A DNA stretch of 64,000 nt from contig CM121343.1 of the NCBI GenBank assembly GCA_051530055.1, positions 3,876,389-3,940,388 on the forward strand. Direction: 5' to 3'. The notes under the pieces are model-generated. The model was not told the origin of the DNA, did not search any database, and saw only the letters and a list, made by a program, of their open reading frames with translations. Positions within the stretch are counted from its first letter, which is position 1, and each line of letters opens with the position of its first letter. Both the position numbers and the translations under genes were made by a program. Shown in pieces: positions 6,002 through 62,156 of the stretch. This DNA comes from Neoechinorhynchus agilis (taxonomy: Eukaryota; Animalia; Acanthocephala).

Positions 6002-7631
6002 ATGCCATTCTTCGGTACGGGAGTTGGTGAGATGATGATATTGAGTGGTAGATCCCACCCAGAACTTTCTGGTTTAATCGAATCGTGAGTTGTTTGTGAG
6101 TCTCAACAAATTTGGCAATGTATCATATTTATATAGGCGCTTTAAAAAGTCGGGAATTGTTAAGTTCTCGAAAAAAGAAAACGGCGGTAAGATTGCGGTC
6201 GCTGATCGACCAATATAAGATTGATTTTAGAAATCAAGTTAGAATTGGAGGATTCAGTAAGGGGAAAAGACATTTATATTATCCAAACTGGTACAAGGTC
6301 AGTTTTCTTTGATATTTTTTGATAAAAATTCCTTAAAATTTATTAAAATCTAAAGAAAGCCCGATGATGATATCATCGAATTAATGATACTTGCATATAC
6401 GTGTCGTACAAATTGTGCCAGAAGGGTTATTGGTGTGGTTCCATATCTGCCATACAGTAGACCGCATGTGCATCACTCAATGGGAATGTTCATTTGTTGA
6501 CTGAGTGATCACTAAGCAGAATAGACAATGTAGGCAGAAAAAACGAGGCGGAATCGTGACAAGTCTACTCGCAAAAATGTTCAAAAGTGCAGGTATTTTT
6601 GAAGTAAATTTTTTGTTTACTTTTTAAAAGTGTAAAAGGCTTTTCACATTTGATTACGCTCGATCTTCACCGTAAAGAAATTCAAGGATTTTTTGACTTT
6701 CCGGTCGACAATTTAGTTGGATTCCGTTTTCTCACCGATTATATTGCATCCGATGTAAGGCATTTAAGAAAAAAAGAGCATCGAAGTATCAAACCTTTTT
6801 TTTAAGATCCCGGACTTTGTTAACGCGGTCATTGTTGCTAGACACCCCAACCAAGTGAAGAGAGCGACTTCTTTTGCTAGTCGCTTGCATATCAATATTG
6901 CTGTTGTTCATGGCGGATCTAATGGCGACGGTGACGACGATGATGGGAATGAGGTAAATAAAGACATGATTTATGAGGACAACGAAGAGGACGAAGGCAG
7001 TGAAAATTCTGACAATGAAAAAGATGATTGCAAACTTACCAATCGCTTACTTAGGGATCTCCGCAGACTTAGACCGACGAAGAATGGTGAACTTGAAATC
7101 GTTGGAGATGTGAATGGGAAAATCGCTATTATTGTTGTAAGTCCAATTTATTTTAAGTTGTTAACTACATTCGTATGACATTTTAATATGTTTTTTTTAG
7201 TATGATCGATAAAAGTGATCAAATTAAGAATCTGTTCTCTATTTACACCATCAGTAAATTTTTAACCGCTTGTTTAGGAGGATATTGTCGATGATCTAAC
7301 GACGTTCACCGATACAATAAAGATTCTACGCGAACATGGTGCATATAAGATCTATATAATAGCCACCCATGGAATATTGGGACCTAACACCATGACCCTC
7401 GTTGAAAGTCTCGATATTGCTGAATTGGTTGTAACGAATTCGATTCCAAATGAGGCCTACGGGATACAAAGTCCCCGTATAAAGATAGTGGACATTAGCC
7501 CTTTGCTTACTGAGGCGATAAGACGTACCTACAATCAAGAATCGATGTCATCCCTTTTTAGAGAATTCGATCTTCCTACGTTTTTTCCAGGTGAAGGGCC
7601 AAGACGAATATCGAGATTCGACATGTCATAG
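6002..7631 (+). CDS. PRPSAP: Phosphoribosyl pyrophosphate synthase-associated protein; 6 GT-AG introns plus one non-canonical TA-flanked interruption
   Basis: Reconstructed protein: ILSGRSHPEL..EDSVRGKDIYIIQ..IIELMILAYTCRTNCARRVIGVVPYLPYSRQCRQKKRGGIV..LITLDLHRKEIQGFFDFPVDNL..EIVGDVNGKIAIIVEDIVDD..ATHGIL..EAIRRTYNQESMSSLF. This is the AP39/41 type. Confidence 0.92.
6458..6523 (+). other. TA-flanked hairpin insertion in PRPSAP (64 nt; non-canonical intron or IES-like)
   Basis: Direct repeat TAGAC at both ends. ATCACTCA (6472-6479) and TGAGTGAT (6502-6509) lie symmetrically, 14 nt from each outer end. Removal gives CCA TAC AGT AGA CAA TGT = PYSRQC. Confidence 0.9.
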
Positions 7632-7651
7632 TTTTTAATATAAAATCTTTC

Positions 7652-10364
7652 TCACAGTTCAACCTTCTTTACGCTTGATTCAACCTCTGTTGCGCTGACA
7701 CGTATCGGCCACATTCGTCCAATTATTCCGGCTTGGATAGCTAGGCCATAGACCACTGTCGTATCTGGATCGATTTTACAGTTCAACTTACTCCCATGAA
7801 ATCGATCTGAAATGATTTGACGAATCCGCGGTATCCTACTCGAACCTCCTACGAGCACCACGTCATCCACTTGATCATCCGTTATATTGGCAGACGCCAA
7901 AACCGCATTGATCGGTTCAATTATTTTTTGAAATACTTCTTTGTTTACTTCTTCAAACTCTGCCCGAGTTACTAATAATACCGTTGAGTTAAAATTTATG
8001 TTGCATTCATTCACTAGACTCAAATTGCGTTTGCACTGTTCACTTATACTTTGTAGCCAGTAGTGATGAGGTAGATTTGAACACTTTCTTCTTATTAAAT
8101 TCATTAGATTCTTTGTAAAGTCTTGTCCCCCTAATGCTTTAATTCTCATTTTCCATCAAATCCAAAATTAGACTCAGCTAGAAATTCAGAGAAATACCTA
8201 ATTCTCAATACGAACCTCCAATTATGAGAATGGAAAAACCTTGCGAAATATTTCTCAGATAAATGAGTAACGACAACACCGGGATTCGCCAACTTACACC
8301 TATGAGAATGTTTGAAGATTGAACTGTTTATATTGGGTTTTTTTCCTTTAGCGAATAATCAAATAATTGATTTATTTTTGTTTGATAAATTTTTGGCCTT
8401 CGCGTAGACCTTCTTCAGTCTATTGTTTGAAAGTGAAGAAGGCCAAAACTGATCAAGCAAAAAATAAAAAAGTAAATGATGAACATCTTTACAATTGAAA
8501 AGAAATTCAAATGATTGTTTTCGAAGAGGCACAAAATCTTATACGCCTTTTTATCAAGGTTGTTAGACGCTTTCATTCAATCAAAATAACTTTGATTAAA
8601 AGGCGTATAAAATTGTTGTATGCCCCTTCGAAACCAATCGACGGTTTAAAACCAAAATCATTTTAACCATCGACAGAGAAAATTCTTTGGGTTAATCTTT
8701 TTTTTTGAAAATAATCCCGGTCATAACGTATTTCGCCTATAAATCCAATGGGATTATTTTCAAAAAGGATGATAAATTTGAAAGTATTTATATAATTGAT
8801 TGTTTTAGTAAAGAAATTCAAATGATTGTTTTCGAAGAGGCACAAAATCTTATACGCCTTTTTATCAAGGTTGTTAGACGCTTTCATTCAATCAAAATAA
8901 CTTTGATTAAAAGGCGTATAAAATTGTCGTATGCCCCTTCGAAACCAATCGACGGTTTAAAACCAAAATCATTTTAACCATCGACAGAGAAAATTCTTTG
9001 GGTTAATCTTTTTTTTTGAAAATAATCCCGGTCATAACGTATTTCGCCTATAAATCCAATGGGATTATTTTCAAAACGGATGATAAATTTGAAAGTATTT
9101 ATATAATTGATTGTTTTAGTAAAGAAATTCAAATGATTGTTTTCGAAGAGGCCCAAAATCTTATACGCCTTTTTATCAAGGTTGTTAGACGCTTTCATTC
9201 AATCAAAATAACTTTGATTAAAAGGCGTATAAAATTGTCGTATGCCCCTTCGAAACCAATCATTCCTTCTTCATATAAGACAACCAATATGAATACCCTC
9301 CAGTTATGTAAATTGCATTATATAAAATGTCTACAATATCCAAGAGAACATTGTAGCTTTACTAATTTTAGCCAGTCCGAGAAAATAATTTTGATAGCGC
9401 GCTATTTGTTCGGCAAGACAATGCGTTCTGACGGATGAAGAATCTACGCTAGACATGAAAGGCCTTGGGTTTCTTGAGCGGACTGACGTAGTAAAATGAG
9501 AACTTAAGCAGTAATCTTCGATGGCCGGCCATTGCGATCGTTAGAAACATTGAGTTCTCAACTCTCATAATTGAAACGTCAGTCGTTCCACCTCCAACAT
9601 CGATGACGATCACGTTCAAAGTATTGGCAATCGACCGGTGATGTAACCCATAAGCTAGAGCGGCTGCTGTTGGCTCGTTTATGATCCGGCTCACGTGTAA
9701 TCCTAACGCAGTTGCGCATCGAGCAGTGGCATTTCGTTGAAAATCATCGAATTCTGCCGGTACGGCCATAACGCAGGCTTTAAATGAACCTTTCATTTGA
9801 TTTTCAGCCGCTCGCCTAAGTTCTTTTATGATAAGAGAACCAATGTACTCCGGACTAATACGACGCTTGTCAGATAACTCAAACAACGGTTGTCCCAATT
9901 GATTTATGTGAATTTTGAACGGATATCGATCGAACTCTGTCTTGTCTCCTCCAATTGTTGGAAAATGTCTTCCAATGAACCTTTTTGTATCGTATATAAC
10001 GTCAATATCTTGATCACCCCTCAACATTGCTTCTTGTTCAGGCATTCTTTTTGAATGTAGCCAATGAGAATGTATGAAATAGAGCCGGGTATCCAATCAG
10101 CGCACTATCATGAGTACTCTTGTGCTTAAAAGCCACAATGGATGGAATACATACTCGATCTCGTCTTTGAACTTTCACTAGGATGTATTCCGGATTCGCG
10201 TTTTTCCCACTTGAAGACCGGTAGTAGCCAACACAACTATAAGTCGTCCCAAGGTCGATTCCCATTAAGTGGGCCTTCGGTGCAGGCCAATACATTTGTC
10301 CGAAATATCCAATTAATAACAAACAGGCAGTTCCTAACCCAGCTAAAGCTGACCCACTTATCAT
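7652..10364 (-). CDS. HSPA13: Heat shock 70 kDa protein 13 (STCH); both interruptions are non-canonical
   Basis: N-terminal hydrophobic LLLIGYFGQMYWPAP, then GIDLGTTYS, VIYDTKRFIG, INEPTAAALAYGL, DVGGGTTDVS, LGGQDF and VGGSSRIP. C-terminal WPIRVSA with no substrate-binding domain. Confidence 0.93.
8132..9513 (-). other. TA(A)-flanked 1380-nt insertion with 19-bp imperfect terminal inverted repeats in HSPA13
   Basis: TA-ATGCTTTAATTCTCATTTT ... AAAATGAGAACTTAAGCAG-TA. Removal gives CGA AGA TTA GGG GGA CAA GAC TTT = RRLGGQDF. Confidence 0.92.
8499..9260. repeat. 311-bp tandem repeat (~2.5 copies) nested in the HSPA13 insertion, next to a dispersed MITE-family fragment (~8355-8500)
   Basis: AAAGAAATTCAAATGATTGTTTTCGAAGAGG at ~8499, 8810 and 9121. 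The fragment at 8395-8437 matches 11795-11840 in reverse and is related to 25318-25512. Confidence 0.92.
10034..10081 (-). other. 46-nt hairpin insertion in HSPA13 (TA at one end, AA at the other)
   Basis: Arms TTCAGGCATTCT (10037-10048) and AGAATGTATGAA (10067-10078) are symmetric to the ends. Removing 46 nt joins ORF 10038-10364 to ORF 9449-10096 in frame (GYPALEAMLRG..IYD). Confidence 0.7.
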
Positions 10365-11541: not shown

Positions 11542-13430
11542 TAAACGGAGAAGATGTAAGCCATTATTATTAAATGGAAAAATCACCCTTCCACCACACG
11601 TATCCCGTCCTCTTAAGTACTGAAAATAAATGGACTTTCATCAAGTTCGGTTTTGGTGGTGTTATGATAATGTTGATATTTTCATATTTCGTATATACCC
11701 ATGCAGCGTCATGAAGAGTTTAAGCGATCACACTATAACCTTTTTTTGCAAAAAAACTTTTTTTTTATGGATAATTTTCGACTTTCGCTTAGGTTCACTT
11801 TCAAACAATAGACCGAAGAAGGTCTACACGAAGACCTTTTTTGAAGTTTTCTGAAATACAAGTTTAAATTTTATATATTTTCTCCAACCAAAAAGTACAA
11901 TATATGAATTCTTAATTACTTCAAATGAAATATTTTTATTATTTTACCGCGAAATTCAGTGGTATATTTCAGTTTCATCGAAATGTGTCTCCTTAATGTT
12001 ATTTTTAGATTGGAACAAATGTTTTTAAATTAAAGCTAAACGAGGATAAATAAGAACAGGTGTTAAATTGAAGTTTAAAAACAATCGAATGTATGATTTA
12101 ATTACAAGGATGGCGGCGTATTAATAAACCTAAGTAATAGTTTAAAATTGGTCTATCCATTTGCATTCAACCTCGCTTCCAGTAGTGGGAAACGCTAAAG
12201 TACTACCCAACAGAACTATGCCGGCTGCGACTTCGAGTACCATTTCCGGACAGGTACGCTCGGAACACTGGACACTAATGGGCACTTTCCGAAATCCTCA
12301 GCCATTATCCAGAATCTGCGGAGACCGGTGACCGCTGCAACGCCATGGACAATATGGATTTCCAAGGCCAAGCAATCGGATCTGTGACCTCATTTCTCAC
12401 TCTTCCTTAATGAAATTAATCACGACAAGGCTAGGACGTCTCCCACATCCCTCGGATGGGGCGTTTGGTCTCTCTCGTCGCCTATCGATGAACTGTGAAT
12501 GCGACTCTGCTAAATTATCTACTCTTATCAATGTTGCACTAAAGAAGATCCTTGAACGAGTTACTGATACTCTAAAGGGTTCATTATTTGAAGCGATGTG
12601 CACGATTTAGCATGTATTAATGGAGGCTATTCCGTGTGAAATAAGGTGCAAGTGGAATAAATCTAACGGTTCCAAAGAGGAATTCTAAGAAACAAGCTAA
12701 AGATTTACGGAAATCGACTAGCTTCTAAAAAGGAGAATACGCTACGTAAAACTCAAACGAAGATTTGTTGGAAACGAATGGTGTTCAGAAGACTTCGGAT
12801 GTTTCCACGATTATTAGGGACTTGGCACAACCCACAGGAGGTTAATGATTCTAAAATTTCTGTGTGGAGGAGTATGATATTAGAACTTTGATAAAAGGTA
12901 ACCACGGGAAAACGAAAGCGATTCACCTTCAGTAACTACTAAAGAAACATCTAGACGAATAGGAAAACGAGCAAAAGGAGGACAATACTATTACAACCAA
13001 TCAAGCCTCCGCGATTCATTTCGGTCATGATACGCCTTTCGACCCATCGTATCATCCACTCCTCCCTCAAGAATCTAAATCGCATCATTTTTATTAATGG
13101 TATATTGCAATCCCCTGCTATAGATCCTTTCGCCTCTGATGCACACTACCACCATAATCCTTCGTCCCTGACTTGCATTCTGCGTTCCCCCCCCAACAAT
13201 TGTTGTGCTCATATCCTCCAAAAATCCCTTTAAACCACGCTCACGTCTTCTCAATTCTCTCTTCCTGAACAGGAAATACAAGCTCCTTTCTTCACAACTT
13301 CGTTTTCGAATCTATCCACATAAAAACTCATCATCGCATCTTTCCATCACCCCTCCAAACTGAACCCAGACACTTTAAAACATATTACACATCCCAAAAA
13401 ACTCTAAGAGTAGGCGACTCACCGACCTCT

Positions 13431-14231
13431 TTGACTATTTACGATTCCGCCGGTGCTGTGCATAACACCTTCTTTAGACAAAAAGATAAGCTGGCAAAAT
13501 TAGATGAGACAGTGAAAGCCTCTCTCGAGAAAATTTTAAATACTCAGCTGTCGAACGAGACTTGGCGTCAAGCACTCTTGCCTGTGTCCTCCGACAGTTT
13601 GGTATTCTTTTTAGAAGATATATCCTTGCCGGCTTATTTGGGGTCGTATGAAGTAAGCCGGGCGACGATTACACATTGGATAAAGATTTCGTGGAGACTC
13701 TTAATCTTTGGCGTGGAGCAGGTACCCGTCAATGGTTGCAAACGATCAGTTTGGGAATCACTCCTCATGGCGAGAATTCATAACTCTTTAAATTCAGATT
13801 CTCGTGACCTGGTGGGCCGAACTCGATTGGCTGCAATCCCTACAAGAGAATCGGGTGCTTGGCTCAACGCTATGCAAATCGCTTCTGTAGATATCCTTCT
13901 CTCCAATGAGACAGTAAGGATTGCAGTGTCCCTGAGACTTGAGGTTGCCGACCGTGGAGCCATCGGGACGCCATGGAATCGTCTGTGGGCAATCAGGCGG
14001 AAGGTACTCACGACACGCCGAAATGAATCCAACTCTCTTAGTCGTGCCTTGAATGCACCCAACATCCTAGAGCCGAGCAATCTTTGCCGACTTGATGGCC
14101 GCCGCAGACCGGACGGTGTCACAGTATTCCCGTGGCGAAGGGAGGCAAATGTTAGCAACCGACAACATCAAATTCGCCGCTTAGGATCGCAAAAAGGATC
14201 TGAGTCGAAACCATTATTTCGTCCCCCTTGA
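13431..14231 (+). mobile_element. Decayed RLE-type (CRE-like) non-LTR retrotransposon fragment
   Basis: LEKILNTQLSNETWRQALLP, RESGAWLNA, ETVRIAVSLRL and NILEPSNLCRLDGRRPDGVTVFPW. Internally deleted. Confidence 0.85.
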
Positions 14232-15009: not shown

Positions 15010-15183
15010 TATTATTTTGGTGATAATCCCGGTAATAGCACATCTGATTTTGATTTATTGGAAATATTTTGAAGAAGATGACCCGAATTTTCCTCCGAAA
15101 ACAATGAGGCGAGGTCACCTCCTTCGAAATATTTCCAATAAATCAAATGTGCTATTACCGGGATTATTATCACCAAAATAATA
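15010..15183. mobile_element. TA-flanked palindromic MITE-like element
   Basis: Perfect outer arms TATTATTTTGGTGAT / ATCACCAAAATAATA. Opposite-strand ORFs 14972+ and 15012- translate almost identically. Related to 55854-56040, 62279-62427 and 50141-50221. Confidence 0.9.
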
Positions 15184-15618: not shown

Positions 15619-17263
15619 TTAAGGGATTTTTGAGTTGCTGACTTCGACAATTAAGATGAAAGAGTTTGGATCGCCATAAAAGCGCAGTTCTTGTCTGTCT
15701 GAAGTGCAATTTTCAGGACCATCTCGTCCATTGCCATGATCGTAAGCAATCGATATTTTGGAAACTGTCTTTCCAACACCGATTACTTTTCGGTTCAAAT
15801 ACTGTTTGACAGACAGAATCGACATTGACACCGAAAAACGCACACTAAATTCACGTTTCTCGTTTTCCAAATAGATACGGACAAACGCGAAATATCCTCC
15901 ATTGGCCGCTTTAACATCTCCCGTTGAAGATAAATCATATTTCTCAACAATTCGCTTAACAGTCTCATTAGTGGAAATGAACTCATCAACATCATGTCTA
16001 TTGCCGATTATATTCTTTATCCTGGCTTGGGTATATTATATCGATTGTTCAATATTACGCGTCGAGCACTAAAAAAACAACCAATATATTAATTGATTTC
16101 ACCATCGGTCCTTGCTCGTTCATCAATAACACTTCGATTGATTGTACGTAGGTTTGGAAAATGAGCAATGAATACATCCCACCAAGTGCAAGATTTCCAC
16201 GGGCTCAAATGGTCCATCGAGTAATCAAAACATAGACTCTCGAGGTTTTGTAATCCACGCGGCCAAGTCAATTCTCCATCTATCAAATTTAACATTAACG
16301 GACATCCGTTTATACTCAGCTTACGTATTGGTAACGATGAACTACATTTGTAACATAAATCTCGATTTTCGCTAATTGAAAGTTCAACGAGGTTTGGCGC
16401 ATTTTTAGCCAGTTGGTCAACAGTCAAATTCCAATCTTTGATATTATTATCGACCACGGATAAAAACTGCATAGTAGAACAGTACCAATCGCCAGAGAGA
16501 TTAGAGATTTTATTTTTATCGGCTCTTAGGAATTTAAGATTTTGAAAAACGGAAAATAATGGGAGAATATCCTTCTCAAAATCATAACCCATTCCGACGA
16601 TATTAAGTTCGGCTAAACTATTCACCACGCATTTTTTGCCGTTCGATACTTTTAGGCGACTAAAACTGACATCCAAAAATCGGAGATAAGGCAATAAATC
16701 CGATATAAAAGACGTTATCGTACTCCAGTCTCCTATAAGGCATTGAGGAATATACAGGGATTCTATATAAACCGATGCAAAAATATTTTTTAGCTCTTCC
16801 TTGTCCCCTATCTCGTTTACATGATAATTAGTTAAATCAATTACATTGTGAATCAATTTCATTCCGGAATAATAGACTTCAAACTCGCATCGATTGGTTT
16901 TATCCGCTTTAAAGAGATCACCATTTGATTGTCCTAAATATCGATCACTTATGCCAGTCTTTCTTGGAAGTTTTCGTCCGTCTAAGAATTACTGGTTATT
17001 GCATAGAGGATGCTTGAACCGAAGTTGGCCAATTTCGGCCTTATCAATGAAGCACTTTTCGGCCCCGCCGAACTAGTGGAAAAATACGTTTTTCCAGCTA
17101 CGGTGCCATTGTGGGTTCCACTGTTTAGATCATCCCATTCCACACCATAGTAAATTCCTGGATGACCGTCGACTGGACCCACGTACCGAACAGTGCCCAG
17201 CTTGTCAAGAGCGAATAATCGCTTTCCAACTTGCGCCTCGGGATCCAGCGTTTCTGACGTCAT
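15619..17263 (-). CDS. TBCE: Tubulin-specific chaperone E (CAP-Gly, LRR, UBL); two non-canonical interruptions
   Basis: CAP-Gly GTVRYVGPVDGHPGIYYGVEWDD..HNG, LRRs (LRFLDVSFSRL, LVELSISEN) and a C-terminal UBL (SMSILSVKQYL..LRFY). Confidence 0.93.
16034..16091 (-). other. TA-flanked 56-nt hairpin insertion in TBCE
   Basis: Gene-strand arms TAATATATTGGTTGTT / AACAATCGATATAATA (13/16 complementary). Removal eliminates the TAA stop and gives GEINYTQARIKNIIGNRHDVDEF in frame with the UBL exon. Confidence 0.88.
16950..16998 (-). other. TA-flanked 47-nt hairpin insertion in TBCE
   Basis: Direct repeat ATAA; arms CCAGTAATTCTT / AAGAAAGACTGG (10/12). Removal gives FGSSILYAISDRYL. Confidence 0.88.
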
Positions 17264-17786: not shown

Positions 17787-20303
17787 GGATTCTTCGACCC
17801 TTCGCGCATTCTAAGATGTTCACCCCAGACCAAACGCCTTTTCTCTTTGTTCCTTTGAGATTATTTAGTTTCCTTTTGATAGTAACTTTCGCTGTTTCTG
17901 GCTATGTTTCTCCTTGAATAACTTCTTGTTGATTTTTATTCGCTGAAGATTTTAAATCTTCACTTCTCCGAGAGTCCAGATTCTTCGACCCTTCTCGCAT
18001 TCTAAGATGTTCGCCCCAGATCAAACGCCTTTTCTTTTAGTTTCTTTGAGATTATTTAGTTGCTTTTTGATAGTGCCTTTCGCTGTTTCTGGCTATGTTT
18101 CTCCTTGAATAACTTCTTGTTGATTTTTATTCGCTGAAGATTTCAAATCTTCACTTCTCCGAGAGTCCGGATTCTTCGACCCTTCTCGCATTCTAAGATA
18201 TTCGCCCCAGATCAAACGCCTTTTCTTTTAGTTTCTTTGAGATTATTTAGTTGCTTTTTGATAGTGCCTTTCGCTGTTTCTGGCTATGTTTCTCCTTGAA
18301 TAACTTCTTGTTGATTTTTATTCGCTGAAGATTTTAAATCTTCACTTCTCCGAGAGTCCAGATTCTTCGACCCTTCTCGCATTCTAAGATGTTCGCCCCA
18401 GATCAAACGCCTTTTCTTTTAGTTTCTTTGAGATTATTTAGTTGCTTTTTGATAGTGCCTTTCGCTGTTTCTGGCTATGTTTCTCCTTGAATAACTTCTT
18501 GTTGATTTTTATTCGCTGAAGATTTCAAATCTTCACTTCTCCGAGTCCAGATTCTTCGACCCTTCTCGCATTCTAAGATATTCGCCCCAGATCAAACGCC
18601 TTTTCTTTTAGTTTCTTTGAGATTATTTAGTTGCTTTTTGATAGTGCCTTTCGCTGTTTCTGGCTATGTTTCTCCTTGAATAACTTCTTGCCGATTTTTA
18701 TTCGCTGAAGATTTCAAATCTTCACTTCTCCGAGAGTCCGGATTCTTCGACCCTTCTCGCATTCTAAGATATTCGCCCCAGATCAAACGCCTTTTCTTTT
18801 AGTTTCTTTGAGATTATTTAGTTGCTTTTTGATAGTGCCTTTCGCTGTTTCTGGCTATGTTTCTCCTTGAATAACTTCTTGCCGATTTTTATTCGCTGAA
18901 GATTTCAAATCTTCACTTCTCCGAGAGTCCGGATTCTTCGACCCTTCTCGCATTCTAAGATATTCGCCCCAGATCAAACGCCTTTTCTTTTAGTTTCTTT
19001 GAGATTATTTAGTTGCTTTTTGATAGTGCCTTTCGCTGTTTCTGGCTATGTTTCTCCTTGAATAACTTCTTGCCGATTTTTATTCGCTGAAGATTTCAAA
19101 TCTTCACTTCTCCGAGAGTCCGGATTCTTCGACCCTTCTCGCATTCTAAGATATTCGCCCCAGATCAAACGCCTTTTCTTTTAGTTTCTTTGAGATTATT
19201 TAGTTGCTTTTTGATAGTGCCTTTCGCTGTTTCTGGCTATGTTTCTCCTTGAATAACTTCTTGCCGATTTTTATTCGCTGAAGATTTCAAATCTTCACTT
19301 CTCAGAGAGTCGGGATTCTTCGACCCTTCTCGCATTCTAAGATATTCGCCCCAGATCAAACGCCTTTTCTTTTAGTTTCTTTGAGATTATTTAGTTGCTT
19401 TTTGATAGTGCCTTTCGCTGTTTCTGGCTATGTTTCTCCTTGAATAACTTGCCGATTTTTATTCGCTGAAGATTTCAAATCTTCACTTCTCCGAGAGTCC
19501 GGATTCTTCGACCCTTCTCGCATTCTAAGATATTCGCCCCAGATCAAACGCCTTTTCTTTTAGTTTCTTTGAGATTATTTAGTTGCTTTTTGATAGTGCC
19601 TTTCGCTGTTTCTGGCTATGTTTCTCCTTGAATAACTTCTTGCCGATTTTTATTCGCTGAAGATTTCAAATCTTCACTTCTCAGAGAGTCGGGATTCTTC
19701 GACCCTTCTCGCATTCTAAGATATTCGCCCCAGATCAAACGCCTTTTCTTTTAGTTTCTTTGAGATTATTTAGTTGCTTTTTGATAGTGCCTTTCGCTAT
19801 TTCTGGCTATGTTTCTCCTTGAATAACTTCTTGCCGATTTTTATTCGCTGAAGATTTCAAATCTTCACTTCTCCGAGAGTCCGGATTCTTCGACCCTTCT
19901 CGCATTCTAAGATATTCGCCCCAGATCAAACGCCTTTTCTTTTAGTTTCTTTGAGATTATTTAGTTGCTTTTTGATAGTGCCTTTCGCTGTTTCTGGCTA
20001 TGTTTCTCCTTGAATAACTTCTTGTTGATTTTTATTCGCTGAAGATTTCAAATCTTCACTTCTCAGAGAGTCGGGATTCTTCGACCCTTCTCGCATTCTA
20101 AGATATTCGCCCCAGATCAAACGCCTTTTCTTTTAGTTTCTTTGAGATTATTTAGTTGCTTTTTGATAGTGCCTTTCGCTATTTCCGGCTATGTTTCTCC
20201 TTGAATAACTTGCCGATTTTTATTCGCTGAAGATTTCAAATCTTCACTTCTCCTAGAGTCCAGATTCTTCGACCCTTCTCGCATTCTAAGATGTTCGCCC
20301 CAG
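17787..20303. repeat. Tandem array, ~191-bp unit (13 units) whose unit includes the CCT3 5'UTR and start codon
   Basis: GATTCTTCGACCCTTCTCGCATTCTAAGAT(G/A)TTCGCCCCAG occurs 14 times at ~191-bp spacing. The last copy is the true CCT3 start (20291). Confidence 0.97.
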
Positions 20304-37447: not shown

Positions 37448-37449
37448 CC

Positions 37450-44699: not shown

Positions 44700-45230
44700 T
44701 AGGATCACAGTGTCCTTAAGACTTGGTCTCCCGGTATGCACGCCCAATCGCCGTCGATGTGGATCTTTGGTTGATGCTTTCGGGCGATACGGTCTCGTTT
44801 GACGAAAGTCAGGAGGAAGGTTCTCACGCCATTCTGAGATCAACAGCGTAATTTCTCGGGCGTTGAGATCGGCGAACTTCCCGAACATCCTGGAACCCGC
44901 CCACCTTTGTCGACTAGACGGCCGTAGGCCCGATGGAATTTCGGTCTTTCCGTGGCGGACATTCCCTACTCTCTCTCTCGAAATCGCTGGAGGTGCCGCC
45001 AGTGCAGCGGAAGGGAGGAAGGTACGAAAATATAGAGAATTAGCAAGGGCCCACTATTTTGTTACCTTCGAAGTAGAGACGTATGGAGCGCTTGGCAGCT
45101 CGGCACTCTGCTCTAGGATCTCTCGAAGAAATTGAGAGAAACGACCGGCGACGCACGAGCAGGTGTATTCCCGTGACAAAATATCTCGCTTACAGTACAA
45201 CGAAGCAGCGTGATAACGACAGCCGAGGAA
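44700..45230 (+). mobile_element. Decayed RLE-type (CRE-like) non-LTR fragment
   Basis: NILEPAHLCRLDGRRPDGISVFPW, AGGAASAAEGRKVRKYREL and FEVETYGALG. Confidence 0.85.
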
Positions 45231-45615
45231 GCAGAGAAGCTTCAATTTTGCGGACGGTGGTGATTGTACGTTTTGTGCTTACACTGATTATGAATACAAA
45301 TTGGTCTTTCACTACGAGGATCAGTTTAAATGGAAAAATCTTGATCTTTAACGAGTCTAACAATTTACTACCAGTTCACACCTTTCATGCAGTGCAAAGT
45401 CCGAGGAAGCTAAAGCATAGTCCAATCGACACAATCAAGTTTATGACCACTCCTGAAAAACGAAACGCGGCTTCAAATCAGCTAATTGTCCACCAAATGG
45501 AGATGTTGTGTTCCATACCTATACAAAAAATGCAGAAGGTTTGATACTTTGCAAAGAAATGGGCTACTGGGTATTATAAACGATTTTCTGGTACATAAAA
45601 CATATTTGGAAAATC

Positions 45616-47435: not shown

Positions 47436-48119
47436 TCAAGGAACGCTCGTTGCAGCTCCTATGGGATTTGGCATGTCCCTGAACTCCATCTTTCCGATTA
47501 AAGGCTTGAGAAGTTTACGACTTCAATATCTAGGTGGGATTGTGTTGAGTGTAATTTATTTCCTTGCGATTTGGTCGTCAATCAAATATCTACCTGATAA
47601 AATAAATTGGCCGAGTAAGATATTAATTACTCGCAGATCGCTTTTTCTGGTTAAAAAGATTAAAAATACATCAACGTTGAAAAATAAACGCTTCTAATAG
47701 TTTTCATGTGTTTATTCGAAATTTATCCGTAACCACTAAAATGAAGTGTGAATGGAATTATGGTCTAAATTTTTTATGCTTGTGAAATGGCTGATTGTGC
47801 GGTTCTTCTCCTCACATAAAATCACAGCTGATAGAAATTCGTTGAATAGCCATAAAAGTTGGTCTGGCACACGTTAGCATTTTAATCCGCGCCGCATGGG
47901 TTATTTCGTACTGTTTTAAAAAGGACAGCAACTGAATGATCCAGAGGCAGAATAAAAGGTTTGTTTTAAAACAGCAAAGCATCGATTTCAGTGTTATATA
48001 TATTGATTATTGAGCATTAATTTGAAGCATCGTAAGTTCTGAGCGGTCGTTATTTTCAACAAAAAGAGGTGCAAATCGATGAGTCTGATACTTCAAGATT
48101 AATCATCTCTAAACGTCGG

Positions 48120-50523: not shown

Positions 50524-53500
50524 TCAATCATTTGGTCGTTCGACCTCAATGTCCTTCGTGCAACCAATAACATCATCGGCGGCCAGTGCGCTGAATGCAA
50601 GTAAATTGGTCTTTAGCCTGTTATGCATTTTGTCGTCATAATTCATTTTCCCGGCAATGCTATGTTCCAAACTATGCTCTACAAACTGATTGAGACTTGC
50701 CATAGCCTCTTTCTCCTTCGCGGGACATTTCGCATTAATCTCGGTTTTAACTTTTTCTGCAAACGCAAGCAAATAGCGTCTTCTGTTGGGTTTAAAATGA
50801 ACCGCTATTAGGTCAATTTCCGATATGATTCTGTGAAGAGTTTCCAGTTCAAAGATTACAAAAGGAACAGCCTCAATAAGTACTGTGGTAATAAATTTTA
50901 AATGGTGTTTGCTTAACACTTGACGTTTTTCCCTTATTGTTTCCAAGACTTCAATTATCATTTCTGAAACATCAGCAATGCAATTTCCTTTAGAATTAGG
51001 GTCCACCTTGCCTTTTTGCAGGAGCAGTTCTATTAAAGTTTTAGTTACTGCTATTGGATCAATATTTACGATAGCTTTAATTGCTCCAACTGTTTTAGGA
51101 GCTTCGGGCCAAATGCAGAGCTTCTCGCGAGAAAGCTTAATAACGGAGGAATGATTACTGCGTTGATTTTCTTCTAATTCACTTTGATCTTCTTTTGTTT
51201 GGATCATTGAAAAGATCATTGAAGCCAGACAACCTTTTAAGCAGTCGCGGGTGACCGTATTACCGGCAGATTTATGGTTTGTACCGAATGAGTACATGTC
51301 CAGAAATGTAATCAGTATTCCAAGCAGGAATTTATGATACATTTTTACTTCGTAGCTGTCGTCGCTTGACTCTTCGTCATCTCTATTTTCGACTGATTCC
51401 AAGTACGATTTTTCGCGTTGGTAGCACATGATGAGCATAGCCATTAGATGTTTTGAGTGCATAGCATTTCGTTGAAACAATTTAATTACTCCGAGAATGG
51501 AGATCGCACGTACATCATAAATACTTGGTAATGATTCACGACACTGATCAATCGAAGAAGATCTTACTATTCGCCTTAATCGAATACCGGATGGCATATT
51601 TACTTTTGCCATCGGAGGCATGGCCATTTTTATATTTGACATATCGTTGATCCCCAAAGGCCATAACAAGCCTGAAATGAACGAAAACATCGACGTGTCT
51701 TGATTATAACTTCCTACATTTATCTCGGTCGTTTTCAATCAAATGCATAGTTTTGTGTTACAAATATTCCAGCATTTCAAATTTTACAGAGAGATAATTA
51801 AACCCAATTTTTCGAAATAATCCACTAAATAATATGTATTTTGTTCGGCGATATAGATATTGATTTATTAATTCCCAGAATGAAGTAACCTTGACCTACC
51901 TTTCAGACCTGAAGAAGTCCGACGAGACGGACGAAATATTGTCACAAAGGGAATTATTAAATCAATTTCTTCACAACCGAACAAAATATATTCATGAACA
52001 ACTTGTTTATAATAATGAGTATGAAAAAATTTCAGAATATTATTAGGTCCAAAAAGCATTCAGGAAGTTAAATTTGGATATCTCAGTAATCGTTCATTTC
52101 TACAACGGTTTGCGCCATCGTTCAAATTGTTGACCTTCAAAACGTGTAAAATGTTATGGAAAAAAACCTTACTAGGCTTTAAAAGTGATGGCTTCTTAAT
52201 GGTTGCCCCAATAGCAAGGTCTGCAAGTCGCATCAATTAGAAGTAGGGAAGATGATCTAACGATAACTTTAAATATTTACTACATTTTGACTGCGATACA
52301 TTGCAAAGTCAATTTGGATATTTTAGCCCATTTACACGGGTTAACAAGCAAAGGTTGAATCTTCTCGTACATCTTCAGCTTATTCACAACGAGGATAACA
52401 TATTTTGACTATAAAGGGGGAACTGAATATACTGATTTGGTTGAAAGCGACCGATTTAACTGTTCGATTGTTGCATTATGCCTTCCGATTAAGTCACATA
52501 GACCTGCGATTGCAGTAACCTTTACACGTGGTTCATCGAACGAAATTGCGGTTACAAGAATTGAAAGCACAAAGTTTAAGTGATCTAGAGGCCGTTTAAG
52601 ATTTCCTAAAACAACCAATGCTTCGACCGCAACGTTCCGTAATACTGGTAAATCGCTTTGGATACATCGAAGAATGAAATCGGTTTGAATGATCAGCATG
52701 TCAGGTGTAAATGTTCGTACACATGGATTCCTAAGCATTTCAACGGTAAGATTTACACACCGAGCCAATGTTGTCTTGGATACCCCTGCCGCCATTTTGT
52801 CATTATTCTTGAGAAAATCACTAAGAGCATTTAAATCTGGGGCAATTTCTTCTTCTTTGACCTCAGTGGGATCACGTTTGCCCATGCATTCTTGACGCAA
52901 TATCCGGTTCATCATTTCCACATAGCAGGCTACATACGCTTGCTCATCATTTTCATATAAGCGGCAAAGTATTTTTGAGACGGTACCGTAAATCGATACT
53001 GGTACTGATGACATTACGATGAGATCTTTTAAACAATAAATTATTCTTAGATGGGGAATTACGTTTAAATTCTCGTAATTCTGAGTCAGAATACCTTTGT
53101 GTCCGTCGAAAACGTGATTTGATGAGACATAGCTACTCTTTGTGAACGTCAAGAGCACCTCCAGATGATACTTTAAAATAAAGGTACAACTGTCGTCCGA
53201 AATCGATTCATTACTTTCAAACTGCGGGACCAAGTGAATCTCAAGGTGCTTCCAAAGAGCGTAAGGGGTCGGTGGCTGAATAAGTGATAAGCAATATTTT
53301 ATCGTCTCTTGACATTCACTCAGTACTGCTTCGGAATTCTTTTCACGTTGACCATAATGCATATGTTTATTGCCTCGGAATAGATTTCCCCACAAAATAT
53401 TATAACAGCATTGACAAAGAACGGACCACAAGAAGACCAACTCAACCGTAGCTGTAGGTATAATAGGTAATCTCAGCTCCCTATCAAACATAATCACGGA

Positions 53501-54787
53501 ATTTCTCATCTTGTTGATACTTGATGTCAAATCCATGCTGATTTGTGTGCTGCACTTCGAATCTTTTAATTCACTTTCCAAAATAGATGGATCGGCTAAG
53601 GTTGTAGAATCCAACTCATATCCATACGTAAATAGAAAGCGCTCGAAAAATTCAGTCATGTGTGTTAGGTTCGTTTCACCTCTTTGGTTCATAATACGTT
53701 CAACATATCGAATAATGAGCATTCTTAACAAATCTTCGTTCCGTAATAACTGGAAATACTTTAAAAGATCGGAAAATTTACCACAAGCGACATCAAGCCA
53801 ATCCTGAACAATGCTGTCGATGAAGAAATCACGGATATCCTGTTCAGGATCGAAAAGACCTGAAATCAATAATTCATATCGCATTTTTGAGCTTAATTGT
53901 TTCAGCTTAACCCTTTTATGCAACCTTTTCAAAGCAGACAGTCGAACGTTTGGGCAGCAGTCATGAGCGGATAATTTGACTAGAACTTCGAGGGTTTCTT
54001 GTCTAATGCACAAAACATCAACAGCGGCGATACGTAAATCAGAAAATAAAGATCTCGTCGCAAGGTTCAACAAAGCATTGGTTACTTCATTATGCTTGAG
54101 ACTACGTGACTGAAACGGTTTTATGGCTCGGCAGGCACATCGTTGTACGAATCTGCAGGTATCATTTAGCCGTTTCAAAAGTGCAGTCTGAAGGTGATCT
54201 AAATGTTTTAATGGGAATCCTGTTGTGTCATTGAAGCAAGTAAATAAATGACTTATGAATTTACAGCATCTTGCCCGTACAAGTGGTCTATGATCGTTCA
54301 ATCTTTCCGGTAAGCGACTAAGTAGATCGCAAATCAGTTTGTCTTTCCATTGAACACCAACACCGAAACCCTTACGAGCATTGTCAGCTACGTTCACATC
54401 ACCATTAGTCGGATCCATTGGAATGTTCTTTAGTTTACCAGATAAAATACATATTAATCCTTGCCAATAGGGTTCAATAAAAACTTGGAGGCGTTCATCA
54501 CGAGTCCAGTCGAATGAAGATCCACCCTTTGTCGAAGGTGTACACATGGCAAGGGTCATATCAAAGTACTCCAAAAAGCAATCCTTCTTCTCCGCATAGT
54601 CAACAAGCGAGTCCTCAAAAAATCCCAACGTAAGCGAATAGTTCGACATTAGTTGCTCGGAATATCCCAAAGAGGTATCGTACTCGAGTTGAACTTCTGA
54701 TTGAACAGCATTGAGAAAATCAGATAACTGCTTATGCATCTTAAATATCTTTTTGTGAATAACCTTGGGCAAGCATGGCGATTGCAC
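50524..54787 (-). CDS. NCAPG: Condensin I subunit CAP-G; two ORFs joined across one non-canonical interruption
   Basis: HEAT repeats (RLNDTCRFVQRCACRAI; DCCPNVRLSALKRL..LLISGLFDPEQDIR..QDWL). The Cnd3 domain is split between IQSDLPVLRNVAVEAL and AISILGVIKLF..LMAMLIMCY..LITFLDMY. Confidence 0.9.
51721..52458 (-). other. TA-flanked 736-nt insertion with 22-bp terminal inverted repeats in NCAPG
   Basis: TA-TCTCGGTCGTTTTCAATCAAAT ... ATTTGGTTGAAAGCGACCGATT-TA (18/22). Direct repeat TAAAT on the gene strand. Removal joins the ORFs in frame (IEQLNVGSYNQD). Contains a nested palindrome at 51831-51992. Confidence 0.93.
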
Positions 54788-55206: not shown

Positions 55207-56082
55207 GTTTCAATTAGCGATGTTTCATTATGAAATAGATTTATATTGAATTGTTTTTTCGGTCTTTTCATTGGCCTTCTTCAGTCAAACTGTAAATAAA
55301 TCTAATCGTTATTTACAATTGACTGAAGAATGCCAATGAAAAGACCGAAAAAATATCAATATAAATCTATTTCCTCAATGGCGAATTATTACACACTCGA
55401 GTTTTTGAAATCAATCTTGCGAATTTTCAAGGCCTCAGCCTCCCGCACACCCGAGTCAAGGCTACCAACTTTTTAGATGCTTGAGAAGGAGGCTGAGGCC
55501 TTGAAAATTCGCAAGATTGATTTCAAAAAATTCGAGTGTGTAACTATTCGCCATTGAGAATACACATCCACTCGAAGGATAAATCTATTTCTGAATCGCT
55601 AATTGAAACATAAACAAGAATCCTCTTGTGGCGATTCACACCCCGAGAATCAATTTTATTTTGAAATATTTCGTGATCCAAACCCACCTTTTCAAACATT
55701 GTCATTACTAGAAATTTTTCTTCGGAAATAATGACAATGTTTGAAAAGGTGGGTTTGGATCACGAAATATTACAAAATAAAACTGATTCTCGGGATGTGA
55801 ATCGCCACACCTGAATGTTATCATGAACGTTATAAACAAGAATGTAAACTTTTGGTGAAAATGATCAACCGGTCATCACGTATTTGATTTCGATATTTCG
55901 AAGGAGGTAACCTCGCCGTATCGGTCATTGTTTCGCAAATGAAGTGACAAATTTGCGAAACAATGGCTGGTGGTGAGGCGAGATTACGTCCTTCGAAATA
56001 TCAAAATCAAATAAGTGATGACCGGTTGATTATTTTCACCTAAAAACCCGAAGGATTTTCTCTGTCGGTGATAAACAAGAAT
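55207..56082. mobile_element. Cluster of four abutting or nested palindromic elements
   Basis: Hairpins at 55232-55373, 55374-55558, 55627-55809 and 55854-56040. Outer inverted repeat 55207-55221 / 55595-55609. ATAAACAAGAAT at 55610, 55832 and 56071. Confidence 0.9.
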
Positions 56083-58221: not shown

Positions 58222-58436
58222 ATGACACAAAATGTGCAATCGGCTGTATCTATAATGAATTGTATATAAATTAATTGTTGTTCAGCAAGACAAAGTTAAA
58301 TAATTTTACATTAACTCTTTAATTTTTAATCATCGCACTAGAAATTAAAAATTAATTTTCCTGAAAAAAGAAGAGCAATTTTGTAGATGAATAAATAAGC
58401 GAACAGCGCGTGTGCGTCAAAATATTTTAATATTTA

Positions 58437-59489
58437 TTCACAATTTTTAAGATACACAATAGGACTTTTACACTATCTCGGATCTTCTTCAGCGATTTTT
58501 CACAATTTTTAAGATACACAATAGGACTTTTGCACTATCTCGGATCTTCTTCAGCGATTTTTCACAATTTTTAAGATACACAATAGGACTTTTACACTAT
58601 CTTGGATCTTCTTTAGCGATTTTTCACAATTTTTAAGATAAACATTAGGACTTTTGCACTATCTCGGATCTTATTTAGCGATTTTTCACAATTTTTAAGA
58701 TACACAATAGGACTTTTGCACTATCTCGGATCTTCTTCAGCGATTTTTCACAATTTTTAAGCTACACAATAGGACTTTTGCACTATCTCGGATCTTCTTC
58801 AGCGATTTTTCACAATTTTTAAGATACGCAATAGGACTTTTACACTATCTCGGATCTTCTTCAGCGATTTTTCACAATTTTTAAGATACGCAATAGGACT
58901 TTTACACTATCTCGGATATTCTTCAGCGATTTTTCACAATTTTTAAGATACACAATGGGACTTTTGCACTATCTCGGATCTTCTTCAGCGATTTTTCACA
59001 ATTTTTAAGCTACACAATAGGACTTTTACACTATCTCGGATCTTCTTCAGCGATTTTTCACAATTTTTAAGATACACAATAGGACTTTTACACTATCTCG
59101 GATCTTCTTCAGCGATTTTTCACAATTTTTAAGATACACAATGGGACTTTTACACTATCTCGGATATTCTTCAGCGATTTTTCACAATTTTTAAGATACA
59201 CAATGGGACTTTTGCACTATCTCGGATCTTATTTAGCGATTTTTCACAATTTTTAAGATACACAATAGGACTTTTGCACTATCTCGGATCTTCTTCAGCG
59301 ATTTTTCACAATTTTTAAGAAACACAATAGGACTTTTACACTATCTCGGATCTTATTTAGCGATTTTTCACAATTTTTAAGATACACAATGGGACTTTTA
59401 CACTATCTCGGATCTTCTTCAGCGATTTTTCACAATTTTTAAGATACACAATAGGACTTTTGCACTATCTCAGATCTTCTTCAGCGATT
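58437..59489. repeat. Tandem minisatellite, 62-bp unit, ~17 copies
   Basis: TTCACAATTTTTAAGATACACAATAGGACTTTTACACTATCTCGGATCTTCTTCAGCGATTT is repeated. Confidence 0.97.
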
Positions 59490-60284
59490 GTTAAAGTGTT
59501 TGATTCGCGTATGTGCCGCAATCCTTTATGCGCATTCGTATTGGTCCAGACTTTCGGAGGCTTAATAAAGGCGAAAATATTTTTGCGCATTTCAATCAAT
59601 AAAGGTCAAACTTGAAATTTGCAATAATTATGAGATGAACCATTACTTGAGTGTTAATAACGTTGATTTTATTTTCAATATAAGTTCCACGCAAACAATT
59701 CTGAAGAAGGTCAGCAGGCCGAAAATTCAAGTTGATGAATTACAATCTTTCTTCGCCAAGTCCTACAATTTTCTTTTCATTTGTATTCAAATTTGCACCC
59801 AAATCATTACAGTAAAAGTAATTATTTTACCTTATAAGAAGCTGTCCTTTTTTTAAGATTAATTTTATTTTTTTCTTAAGCAATTGATCGACAACATTTA
59901 TGTAGTCAGCGTTTCCAAGCCAAAATTGTATTGGCTCCTTTGTAATGCAATAGAAAGTATTTAGTGCTCTTAGGCAACCATAAAAAAATTTGGTGCCATA
60001 TTTCAACAGTATTTACACACTGATAGAAACAAGCCCAACACACAAGCAACCAATCAGTTCTCAACGACAGACATAATAAATTGTGCACGATAGAATAGCC
60101 TCTCTTATCAATGATTGCTGTACAAACTTATCTTAGCATTTAAAAATAGAGAACACAAGTCTCAAAAAATAAATACTGATTTCATTTTTTGGATTTTATT
60201 TCTTAGATTCATCTGTTTAAGGTCGTACTAAAAGCAAAAAATCCCATCCGAGCCCTTACACAAAACATAAAAATAAGTATAATT

Positions 60285-62156
60285 TTAGATCAGATCAATT
60301 GACGGATCATCAAGAAAAAACCAAATGTGCTTCTTGTCTGTAGAGTACTTTGATTTACAATACATTTTTAAAAAGTTCTTCAGCTCAGTGTCCCGAAACG
60401 AGGTATTAATAGTTCGTGCACGTGAACGGAAATCCGCGAACATAAATTTATAGTCCGATATTAGGCAGTTACACAAGCAATCTTTTAAAATATTTTCGGT
60501 ATCACTTTTATTGAGAGTACCTTGAATCGTCTTCATGTAAATAATGTCCGACCGAAACTTAGTCGGCCACCGTTTATTGATGGCAATGAACTTCAAAGAT
60601 TCCAAGCACGATGTCCACTCACCGTCGGATAAGTTAGGCTTAACATCAGTGCCGAGATTTACAATATCAATGTTGAGCTGCAATCTTATTTCACTTAATT
60701 TAAACCAAAGGCGATCTAAAAAGTGTCGTTTGATAAAAGAAACAGCACCATTAAGCTTAGATATAGAGTCGTTGTTGAATGATATGGACAAACTATTATT
60801 TGCGTCGTTCGTTACATCAGCTACGTCGTCCAGTTGTATCGATGGCTTAAGCTTCTTTAACAATTTGGCAGGAGTTAGGTTAAGTTTTCGAACGAGATTA
60901 TCACGACGTTCTTGCCATACTTTATTTTGCAGATCGTAAAAACTGGGAAACTCTTGTGAAAACTTTGAGCACCTGTCAGTCTGCGAGCATGTACGGTTTA
61001 CTGCGAATTGAAGTTTATCGATTAGATTACCAAGAATCGGACAAGCAGCCATCACAATGTCTTCAACATTGCAATTTGAAAGTCTAGATATCTTGAGGAG
61101 GTCAGCCATTCCTCCGAAGGCATAGAGAGAGAAAAACAATAAATCGCGTGCTAAATCCGGGCAAGAGTGTGGACGATCACGTGTGGAACCTTGGATGGCA
61201 TATTTAGATAGGAACATGTCGTTCCTCAACAGGAGACCATTTTCTGAAAAATGGACTAAAACATCATTTCGTTCGACCATTAAACCGCGTTCAATTAGAG
61301 TGACGTAAAACTCGGCGAAACATATCAAGCTCGACCGTTTATCATCAACAGATTCAAAAAAGAAACCACTGAATCAGTTGTGCTGTAAAAACCATATTAA
61401 TCTCAGCGGCAATAGCGTCTGAGTCACGTTCGTGAGATCCAGCGTCCTCTGGTGGTTGGCTCCAGTCCTTGAAAATAACTATATCTTGTTGTTTAAAAGA
61501 CTCTTTGTTTGCATAGTAGGCAACGTCTAAAAAAGATGAACCATCCCTATGCTGACAAAAGTCGCTTATTCCGCTTTCGGATTCAGCCATCTCATTCGTG
61601 AACCGTTTTCGTGTTATTAGTTCGGCTTCCCCGCCTTCTTTTTCGTTAGTGGTAGCATCCTGTACTTCATCTAAGGCGTCCAGATATCCGAGTTTGGACC
61701 TCATACGCAGGACTTTCCTAACTGGACGAACCATCCAACACCCATCAAAATGGGCAGCGACCACGTTGAAATGGTCATCTCTAGGATCCATGCATGAGGT
61801 AGCAGCTTCACATGCTGCGAATGTTCTTTGGTTACTTATCAGTGTAGATTTTGTGTGTGTGTGTGTGAAATAGCCCGTTAAAATCGACACTTAGGCTCTA
61901 TATCGGTTTGATCATAACCAGTTTGCATCGATAATTGTTGGCAGCGGGCTTGTGAATACAAATCAGGGTTCGTTTCAGAAAGGGAAAATATTTCAACCAG
62001 GAGTTGTAGTGAATCCATTCTAGCACCACGTATAAACTGTCTTTGGATACCAATAGATAATGGATACTCAAATAAACAGACTAAGGTGTCGTCCATGCAG
62101 CAAGCAGACAGGTCATATTCGGCAATCACTTCGTCATCTTCGTCAGAATCTACCAT
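60285..62156 (-). CDS. POLR3E: RNA polymerase III subunit RPC5 (Sin-like); one TA-type and one hybrid interruption
   Basis: MVDSDEDDEVIAEYDL..LFEYP, WMVRPVRKVLRMRSKLGYLDALD, EINMVFKRSSLICFAEF (after excision) and LARDLLFFSL match RPC5 motifs. Confidence 0.82.
61340..61387 (-). other. TA-flanked 46-nt hairpin insertion in POLR3E
   Basis: Arms CAACAGATTCA / TGAATCAGTTG (10/11). Removal gives GTT TTT AAA CGG TCG AGC TTG ATA TGT, in frame. Confidence 0.85.
61835..61893 (-). other. Hairpin-bounded 56-nt GT-AG intron in POLR3E with TA just outside the arms (hybrid type)
   Basis: Arms AGTGTAGATTTT / AAAATCGACACT (11/12). GT..AG removal (61890-61835) is in frame; symmetric TA-TA removal (55 nt) is not. 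Confidence 0.6.

Follow-up and report, generated by a model that had tools for sequence, protein, structure and literature searches.

Hairpin-bounded, transposon-like insertions in conserved exons of the acanthocephalan Neoechinorhynchus agilis as candidate non-canonical introns

Interrupted genes and their protein junctions

Neoechinorhynchus agilis is an eoacanthocephalan parasite of fish, and the window analysed here, a 64-kb stretch of its DNA (contig CM121343.1 of assembly GCA_051530055.1), is gene-dense and compact, with a G+C content of 38%. Five genes in this window, namely PRPSAP, HSPA13, TBCE, NCAPG and POLR3E, among whose products are a tubulin chaperone and subunits of condensin and of RNA polymerase III (Pol III), are interrupted within their coding sequence by seven elements that have inverted repeats near their ends and lack the borders of ordinary introns (Table 1). 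A preliminary description of the window had reported seven interruptions in five genes, and all were located as claimed, with 64, 46, 1380, 47, 56, 736 and 46 nt to be removed; the end position that it gave for the system, 61893, falls at an ordinary GT-AG intron (61890-61835) and not at the POLR3E element. The genome to which the window belongs comprises 46.2 Mb, was assembled from some 50 pooled whole worms together with single females, and was annotated with BRAKER; the word 'intron' is absent from the paper that describes it (PMC12690905).

Table 1. Elements, host genes and other features, by position in the window. Element coordinates are those of the + strand and run from the first TA (or other dinucleotide) to the second, inclusive; removal takes out one repeat and the interior.
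Feature	Position	Strand	Removed (nt)	Details
PRPSAP element	6458..6523	+	64	TAGAC direct repeat at both ends
HSPA13 long element	8132..9513	-	1380	TTA direct repeat; terminal inverted repeat 16/18
HSPA13 short element	10034..10081	-	46	5' TA, 3' AA; sole element with such ends
TBCE-56 element	16034..16091	-	56	TA at both ends
TBCE-47 element	16950..16998	-	47	ATAA direct repeat
NCAPG element	51721..52458	-	736	TAAAT direct repeat; terminal inverted repeat 18/20
POLR3E element	61340..61387	-	46	TA at both ends
PRPSAP host gene, part seen	6100..7631	+		Ordinary GT-AG introns 6298-6359, 6593-6638, 6755-6806, 7137-7277
HSPA13 host gene	7652..10364	-		Ordinary introns: 0
TBCE host gene	15619..17263	-		Ordinary introns: 0
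NCAPG host gene	50524..54739	-		Gene model
POLR3E host gene	60285..62156	-		Single ordinary GT-AG intron, 61890-61835
CCT3	20291-22033			Single 580-codon exon
LOTUS/OST-HTH multi-domain gene	34754-36805	+		In-frame TAA at 35018-35020
Satellite-like arrays	17787-20303, 23276-25003, 45614-47436, 58432-59489, 62451-63681, 31245-32003, 17-369			
Long palindromes	55627-55809, 55850-56044, 38402-38588, 55402-55529, 62285-62419, 5663-5802, 15010-15180			
Retroelement-like open reading frame, copies	5350-5660, 13269-14228, 39595-40233, 44803-45132			

Among solved structures, PRPSAP2 is the best relative found for the PRPSAP model, the top matches of the HSPA13 model bear that name, the TBCE model aligns with human TBCE, and the NCAPG and POLR3E models match the Pfam families Cnd3 and RPC5, respectively; searches of the PDB with fragments of NCAPG, POLR3E and the TBCE C-terminus gave no matches. 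Across about 9.5 kb of coding sequence, the five genes contain the seven insertions and not one further stop codon or frameshift. The searches made, which were not exhaustive, turned up no second copies of the host genes. The only same-species entries in the protein and contig collections searched were the genome's own gene calls, and a chimeric query made of three junction regions matched solely the genome's own NCAPG call.

Ordinary introns coexist with the elements. The preliminary description had put their number at about 19; 15 were verified in the window, and all 15 are GT-AG. They are carried by PRPSAP, LAP3, Rap, POLR3E and a homeobox gene, and HSPA13, TBCE and NCAPG are interrupted by hairpin elements only.

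Removal of each element from TA to TA regains an open frame in all seven cases, as judged from the gene models. This had been reported earlier and is confirmed, but its weight was overstated, as chance alone would give such a result at every locus (5–32 in-frame, stop-free TA-to-TA solutions per short locus within the search range). The protein junctions were compared with orthologues for PRPSAP, HSPA13 and TBCE, with a Pfam match for NCAPG and by frame alone for POLR3E. After removal, the PRPSAP junction reads PYLPYSRQCRQKKRG as against PYFPYSKQCKMRKRG in human PRPSAP2, and the alignment is gapless over 129 amino acids, through PYLPYS/RQC (the slash marks the place of the element). Equally gapless are the junction of the 1380-nt HSPA13 element (AMAGHRRL/GGQDF, 13 HSPA13 orthologues), that of TBCE-47 (LYAI/SDRY, compared with human LTAIKNRY and an orthologue's ALKDRY) and that of TBCE-56 (ERARTDGEIN/YTQAR, four orthologues, with ER.R.D.E..Y in common). 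The 46-nt HSPA13 element differs in that its junction, LIGYPA/QEAML, which immediately follows a conserved block, GY(D)A, carries two additional amino acids in a variable loop. The earlier claim of motifs rebuilt without gaps is borne out for PRPSAP, HSPA13-1380 and both TBCE elements. In NCAPG, one Pfam Cnd3 match (660–864) covers the junction (residue 761). The residues that adjoin the elements are conserved (LIGYPA, GGQDF, SDRY, GEINY, PYS/RQC), and their conservation between phyla, together with their intactness in N. agilis, argues that they are translated.

The need for any special removal would vanish if cryptic GT-AG sites were used at the cost of small protein insertions or deletions, or if these copies were broken alleles or pseudogenes whose function is supplied elsewhere. 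We scored possible introns with donor and acceptor matrices built from the 15 ordinary ones (leave-one-out totals with mean 7.4 and standard deviation 4.1), and in-frame GT-AG alternatives with totals in the ordinary range do exist at five loci: PRPSAP, HSPA13-1380, TBCE-47, NCAPG and POLR3E. To this extent the earlier statement that the interruptions lack convincing in-frame GT-AG ends was too strong; what stands is that the scored alternatives delete or split conserved motifs. That of PRPSAP (score 8.7) inserts five amino acids within PYSRQC, that of HSPA13-1380 (11.4) loses GGQDFTK, those of TBCE-47 (about 8) delete SDRY, that of POLR3E (12.2) drops 42 residues, and that of NCAPG, an 826-nt GT-AG intron at 52497-51672 (10.7), takes 30 codons along with the element, the 30–42 residues dropped being conserved across phyla. 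At the 46-nt HSPA13 element the best alternative scores only 4.0 and loses LIGYPA, and TBCE-56 has no usable GT-AG alternative, all of those available giving a truncated protein.

How standard software handles these loci can be seen in the public gene models. The BRAKER model of TBCE (KAL7668705.1, ACOME3_009396) does use one of them, a cryptic 59-nt GT-AG intron at 16992-16934 by which SDRY is lost, and it ends inside the second TBCE element, with 371 amino acids as against 513. NCAPG and POLR3E are each split into two public calls, of 776 + 372 and 248 + 314 amino acids, respectively. In the public models, at least three of the five genes are thus cut short or divided at the elements. This may inflate the core-gene loss reported for acanthocephalans, and the BUSCO losses reported for N. 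agilis may in part be an effect of annotation.

As to broken copies, a TAA stop in frame and a frameshift are indeed seen in a LOTUS-domain gene nearby. On the other hand, the coding sequence of the five genes is otherwise free of such breaks, the assembly consensus of about 50 worms contains the elements, and second copies were not encountered in the limited searches described above. Because the frame is otherwise intact and the elements stand in that consensus, broken alleles or decaying duplicates are unlikely, and we regard an explanation without special removal as decidedly improbable. Instead, exact removal from direct repeat to direct repeat is required for the conserved proteins to be encoded; here the preliminary description is upheld, conserved residues abutting both ends of the elements and the frame being intact elsewhere.

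Inverted repeats, folding and transposon-like structure

The borders of the elements are dominated by TA, which occupies 13 of the 14 termini and both ends of six of the seven elements, the seventh being TA/AA. A strict TA rule, as first proposed, is too narrow for them, the direct repeats ranging from 2 to 5 nt (TAGAC, TAAAT, ATAA, TTA, TA and TA); a target duplication of the TWA type fits three of the seven elements, and two have 5-nt repeats. In no register permitted by the direct repeats are the ends GT/GC-AG. U12-type AT-AC introns were rejected as candidates, with /ATATCC or /GTATCC at none of the 14 termini, and bulge-helix-bulge or IRE1-type sites were considered and do not fit.

Inside these borders, an inverted repeat begins 0–5 nt from the TA in six of the elements and 12 nt from it in the PRPSAP element, whose core repeat is a perfect 8 bp (ATCACTCA/TGAGTGAT). 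The symmetric inverted-repeat score is 7–8.5 in the five short elements (P = 0.003–0.026 each, against random TA...TA segments of the same length; for PRPSAP, a score of 8 and P of about 0.01) and 13–15 in the two long ones (P ≤ 1e-4, against random segment pairs). A symmetric inverted repeat near the ends of every element, as had been described, is therefore borne out by significant scores in 7/7. The TA flanks the base of the stem on either side, and in frame. We consider the significance of the elements to be sound where it lies in the coincidence of homology at the borders, a symmetric inverted repeat and an in-frame TA at the stem base.

Ordinary introns do not look like this. The z-scores of the RNA folds of the five short elements are −4.1 (46-nt HSPA13), −3.6 (TBCE-47), −3.1 (TBCE-56), −2.0 (POLR3E) and −1.4, while in 14 ordinary GT-AG introns folded for comparison (13 of 44–66 nt, one of 141 nt) inverted-repeat scores are 2–6 and z-scores are scattered near 0. 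When the two long elements (736 and 1380 nt) are folded whole, one terminus pairs with the other, and the energy of the arm duplexes is −21 to −22 kcal/mol. Furthermore, the acceptors of the ordinary introns are T-rich, and the elements have no such 3' pyrimidine tract. Because their terminal inverted repeats and fold z-scores differ from those of ordinary introns, the elements are a class apart from them, in agreement with the preliminary description. A scan of the whole window for TA...TA hairpins yielded 141 clusters, where about 97 would be expected at the threshold used, and is too unspecific for finding new members or for comparing coding with non-coding DNA; a census of the dinucleotides flanking hairpins is confounded by long palindromes.

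These contrasts bear on whether a relaxed U2-type spliceosome, aided by the hairpins, might remove the elements at their non-canonical ends. Such a spliceosome has a precedent among animals in the larvacean Fritillaria borealis, which handles transposon-derived interruptions without GT-AG; its introns of this kind are species-specific and recent, end mostly in AG-AC or AG-AT and make up about 95% of all introns (PMC11282704, PMC13326754). The short elements, moreover, are within the size range of ordinary introns (43–66 nt). However, removal in F. borealis is by a modified U2 spliceosome with additional, specialised U2AF paralogues, whereas here the class coexists with normal introns that are strictly GT-AG (15/15), and the elements share no terminal dinucleotides in any register and lack the pyrimidine tract. 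We therefore think spliceosomal removal rather unlikely.

The direct repeats invite a further thought, namely that the segments are kept in the mRNA and bypassed during translation, the ribosome taking off at one codon and landing at an identical one further on, as it does in gene 60 of T4 and at the byps of Magnusiomyces mitochondria. Short hairpin inserts between repeats would suit this, identical in-frame codons stand at the ends of four of the seven elements (AGA, ATA, TTA, AAT), and at TBCE-56, where the upstream reading frame meets a TAA at once, that stop codon lies just after the take-off position. Yet the other three elements have no matching codons, two of the four that do are those of 736 and 1380 nt, which exceed any known bypass, and we know of no such mechanism for cytoplasmic ribosomes of animals; bypassing is extremely improbable.

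Direct repeats around inverted repeats are the hallmark of insertion by a cut-and-paste DNA transposon. The sequences support the view that the elements are non-autonomous, DNA-transposon-like insertions, with terminal inverted repeats (TIRs) at the ends of all seven and a target-site-like repeat of 2–5 nt. The transposon-derived look that had been noted earlier thus holds, in the direct repeats, the TIRs, the related arms of the two HSPA13 elements and the internal repeats. The relatedness of those arms runs counter to the original remark that arms share no sequence: both HSPA13 elements carry the 9-mer ATTCTCATT at an equal offset from the TA. Likewise, the seven 5' arms hold more column-wise information than do random 24-mers that start with TA (P of about 0.003), and a leave-one-out test of an arm position weight matrix places the signal in the HSPA13 pair and, weakly, in NCAPG. 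Judging by this kinship, the 46-nt HSPA13 element may have arisen by deletion within the family to which the 1380-nt element belongs. Further copies of any element arm were not found in the 64-kb window.

The elements fall into two size classes, five of 46–64 nt that comprise the arms, a loop and little more, and two of 736 and 1380 nt. The long ones hold pieces of repeats found at other sites of the window, and the 1380-nt element contains, at 8499-9261, a 311-bp tandem unit (2.5 copies, 99% identity) with nested palindromes. Each 311-bp copy includes a palindrome of 68–76 nt (TATACGCCTTTTTATCAAGG...) and an open reading frame of 74 codons. Miniature inverted-repeat transposable elements (MITEs) of the Stowaway/Tc1-mariner and Tourist/PIF kinds are alike in their TIRs, TA/TWA duplications, lack of coding capacity and nested repeats in long copies. 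They differ in that their usual size exceeds 46–64 nt, and no multi-copy family is visible here in 64 kb. Moreover, ordinary MITEs in exons are mutations, whereas these elements are tolerated in essential genes.

Possible routes of removal

The reading that we favour, and to which we give about an even chance, is that transposon-derived insertions are removed from the pre-mRNA by hairpin-guided, non-canonical excision. Transposon-like elements would have inserted into coding exons of single-copy housekeeping genes; in the pre-mRNA the two arms of each would pair, so that the two junctions meet at the foot of a single stem, and the segment would be cut out and the exons rejoined with no GT-AG signals. 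Each element would then act as a non-canonical intron defined by its hairpin, like those found in euglenids and Amoebophrya, with a mechanism nearest to RTCB-dependent SOS splicing. On our analysis, RNA is the most likely level of removal and machinery of this type its most likely agent.

Several lines of reasoning lead there. First, the segments sit in a whole-animal assembly, the consensus of about 50 whole worms and single females, which favours removal from RNA. Second, the TA/AA element would defeat a TA-dependent cut in DNA and would not defeat a structure-guided route. Third, since the arms differ between most elements, a single sequence-specific transposase is unlikely to recognize them. 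Finally, removal from RNA is favoured because animals possess SOS splicing, a conserved pathway which senses paired inverted repeats in mRNA. In Caenorhabditis elegans and human cells this pathway involves AKAP17A, CAAP1 and RTCB, is triggered by the pairing of inverted terminal repeats regardless of their sequence, acts without GU-AG on Tc1/mariner-type elements with TA duplications, including elements of 1.6 kb, and relies on RTCB for rejoining (PMC12779559). None of these factors is encoded in the window. SOS splicing is the nearest animal system in mechanism, and predicted folds of the elements contain what it takes as substrate, paired inverted repeats within an exon. The two differ in that removal here must be exact, the stems are 8–20 bp as against the 54-nt repeats tested, and the elements, of which the window has about one for every 2.6 kb of coding sequence, appear to be fixed, whereas exonic transposon insertions in C. 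elegans are rare and purged (PMC12779559). A weak hint of removal at the RNA level may also be seen in BUSCO scores, which are higher for the N. agilis transcriptome than for the genome (metazoan set, 54.9% versus 47.1%; eukaryotic set, 71.0% versus 58.4%; PMC12690905), a difference that could have other causes. If the hairpin-guided reading is true, a precise SOS-type excision and ligation, independent of the spliceosome, would be routine for the expression of many essential genes.

There is also a good deal to be said against hairpin-guided removal from RNA. NCAPG is a weak case, as an 826-nt GT-AG intron with good sites may be used there instead. SOS splicing is imprecise, uses several sites and leaves insertions or deletions (PMC12779559), while exactness is needed here, for example at LGGQDF. 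The short stems, about 8–15 bp with mismatches, must be set against the 54-nt Tc1 repeats tested, and their mismatches on the sense strand comprise about three G-U and about four A-C, so that, with no G-U excess in this small count, there is no sign of selection on RNA structure. The short elements (46–64 nt) are of the same size as ordinary introns (43–66 nt), and the spliceosome could be involved. Adult acanthocephalans, furthermore, are largely germline and embryos, and presence in an assembly from whole adults is therefore compatible with excision from somatic DNA.

Programmed excision of the latter kind would mean that the TA-flanked elements are germline segments, cut precisely at their direct repeats from the DNA of somatic nuclei and the ends rejoined exactly, as are the internal eliminated sequences (IESs) of Paramecium; it would place a ciliate-style system in bilaterian exons, and we hold it to be unlikely. 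Paramecium IESs descend from Tc1/mariner-like transposons, are removed from DNA by PiggyMac, have strict TA ends with a TAYAGYNR consensus and lack long arms. The elements resemble them in having TA at both ends (13/14 termini), with one TA kept, in their transposon-like origin and in interrupting coding sequence. The combination of many very short copies with a few long ones is also like that of IESs, whose size distribution was reportedly set out by Arnaiz and colleagues in 2012, and lengths of 46, 46, 47, 56 and 64 lie near a 10-bp ladder. Nor is germline DNA short in the source material, whole adults being full of ovarian balls, embryos or testes. However, the sizes equally match ordinary introns, and with five elements the ladder carries no weight. 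The arms of 8–20 bp, the TA/AA element and the scarcity of the consensus start (TAYAG at only one of the 14 ends) all set the elements apart from IESs, and no transposase gene lies in the window. To our knowledge, precise excision and rejoining of the IES type has not been described in any animal, and our literature search found no paper that ties Acanthocephala or rotifers to DNA elimination. In sum, the elements lie outside the GT-AG and U12 intron classes and do not show the sequence features of Paramecium IESs.

Related systems and other features of the window

The closest match in anatomy to the elements is provided by the introner elements of Amoebophrya, which have inverted repeats of 8–20 nt between their ends, a direct repeat of 3–5 nt over their borders, a predicted hairpin by which the exon ends are brought together, and no family-specific inverted-repeat motif (PMC7789003). 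Amoebophrya differs in being a protist with a reduced set of small nuclear RNAs, and its elements favour poorly conserved genes; those described here interrupt essential genes at highly conserved motifs, and their repeats are dominated by TA. The nonconventional introns of euglenids are likewise non-GT-AG, have terminal inverted repeats that pair and direct repeats that blur the borders, are suspected to be of MITE-like origin and coexist with conventional introns (PMC12501133). The elements share with them terminal inverted repeats able to pair, ambiguous borders, a MITE-like look and conventional introns alongside. In contrast, the euglenid introns (Euglena gracilis, E. agilis) tend to end in CAG...CTG and are the majority class (72%), whereas here, in an animal, there is no CAG...CTG motif, the repeats contain TA, and the elements are a minority beside strict GT-AG introns. 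The features that define hairpin-type introns, that is, non-GT-AG borders, a terminal inverted repeat that pairs and a direct repeat of 2–5 nt, are all present in the elements.

Our search of the literature turned up no account of elements like these from acanthocephalans, from rotifers or from any animal outside the tunicates. If they are true non-canonical introns, Syndermata would join euglenids, a parasitic dinoflagellate and one larvacean lineage as bearers of the hairpin type. If removal is confirmed, a compact 46-Mb animal genome would be seen to tolerate transposon-like hairpin inserts at high density in essential exons.

As regards conventional introns, CCT3 is a single exon in N. agilis, while its counterpart in Pomphorhynchus laevis spans 11.7 kb and has at least nine introns, all canonical and some of 48–50 nt. 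This contrast shows that N. agilis has undergone strong compaction and loss of introns; as evidence on the elements, the P. laevis introns are uninformative. The nearest relatives of the N. agilis CCT3 are that of P. laevis (59% identity) and two transcript contigs, about 50–70 bits above all others.

In the LOTUS-domain gene the stop codon falls in mid-domain (DYGCRKII*LFQSLP), and the frame changes near 35410-35470; no clear GT-AG intron accounts for these breaks, nor does any TA-hairpin element, and on its sequence the gene is possibly a pseudogene.

Several kinds of repeat occur elsewhere in the window. Long, near-perfect palindromes, with arms of 41–81 nt that are 84–100% complementary, are intergenic and densest at 55.2–56.1 kb. 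They have no clear TA flanks, several share TGTGGCGA-type ends or the motif TATTTCGAAGGAGGT, and they seem to belong to families other than the elements. Satellite-like tandem arrays, with units of 42–368 bp in up to 17 copies, occupy many intergenic spaces. Finally, a retroelement-like open reading frame is present in four degraded copies that have in common the motif NILEP..LCRLDGRRPDG..VFPW.

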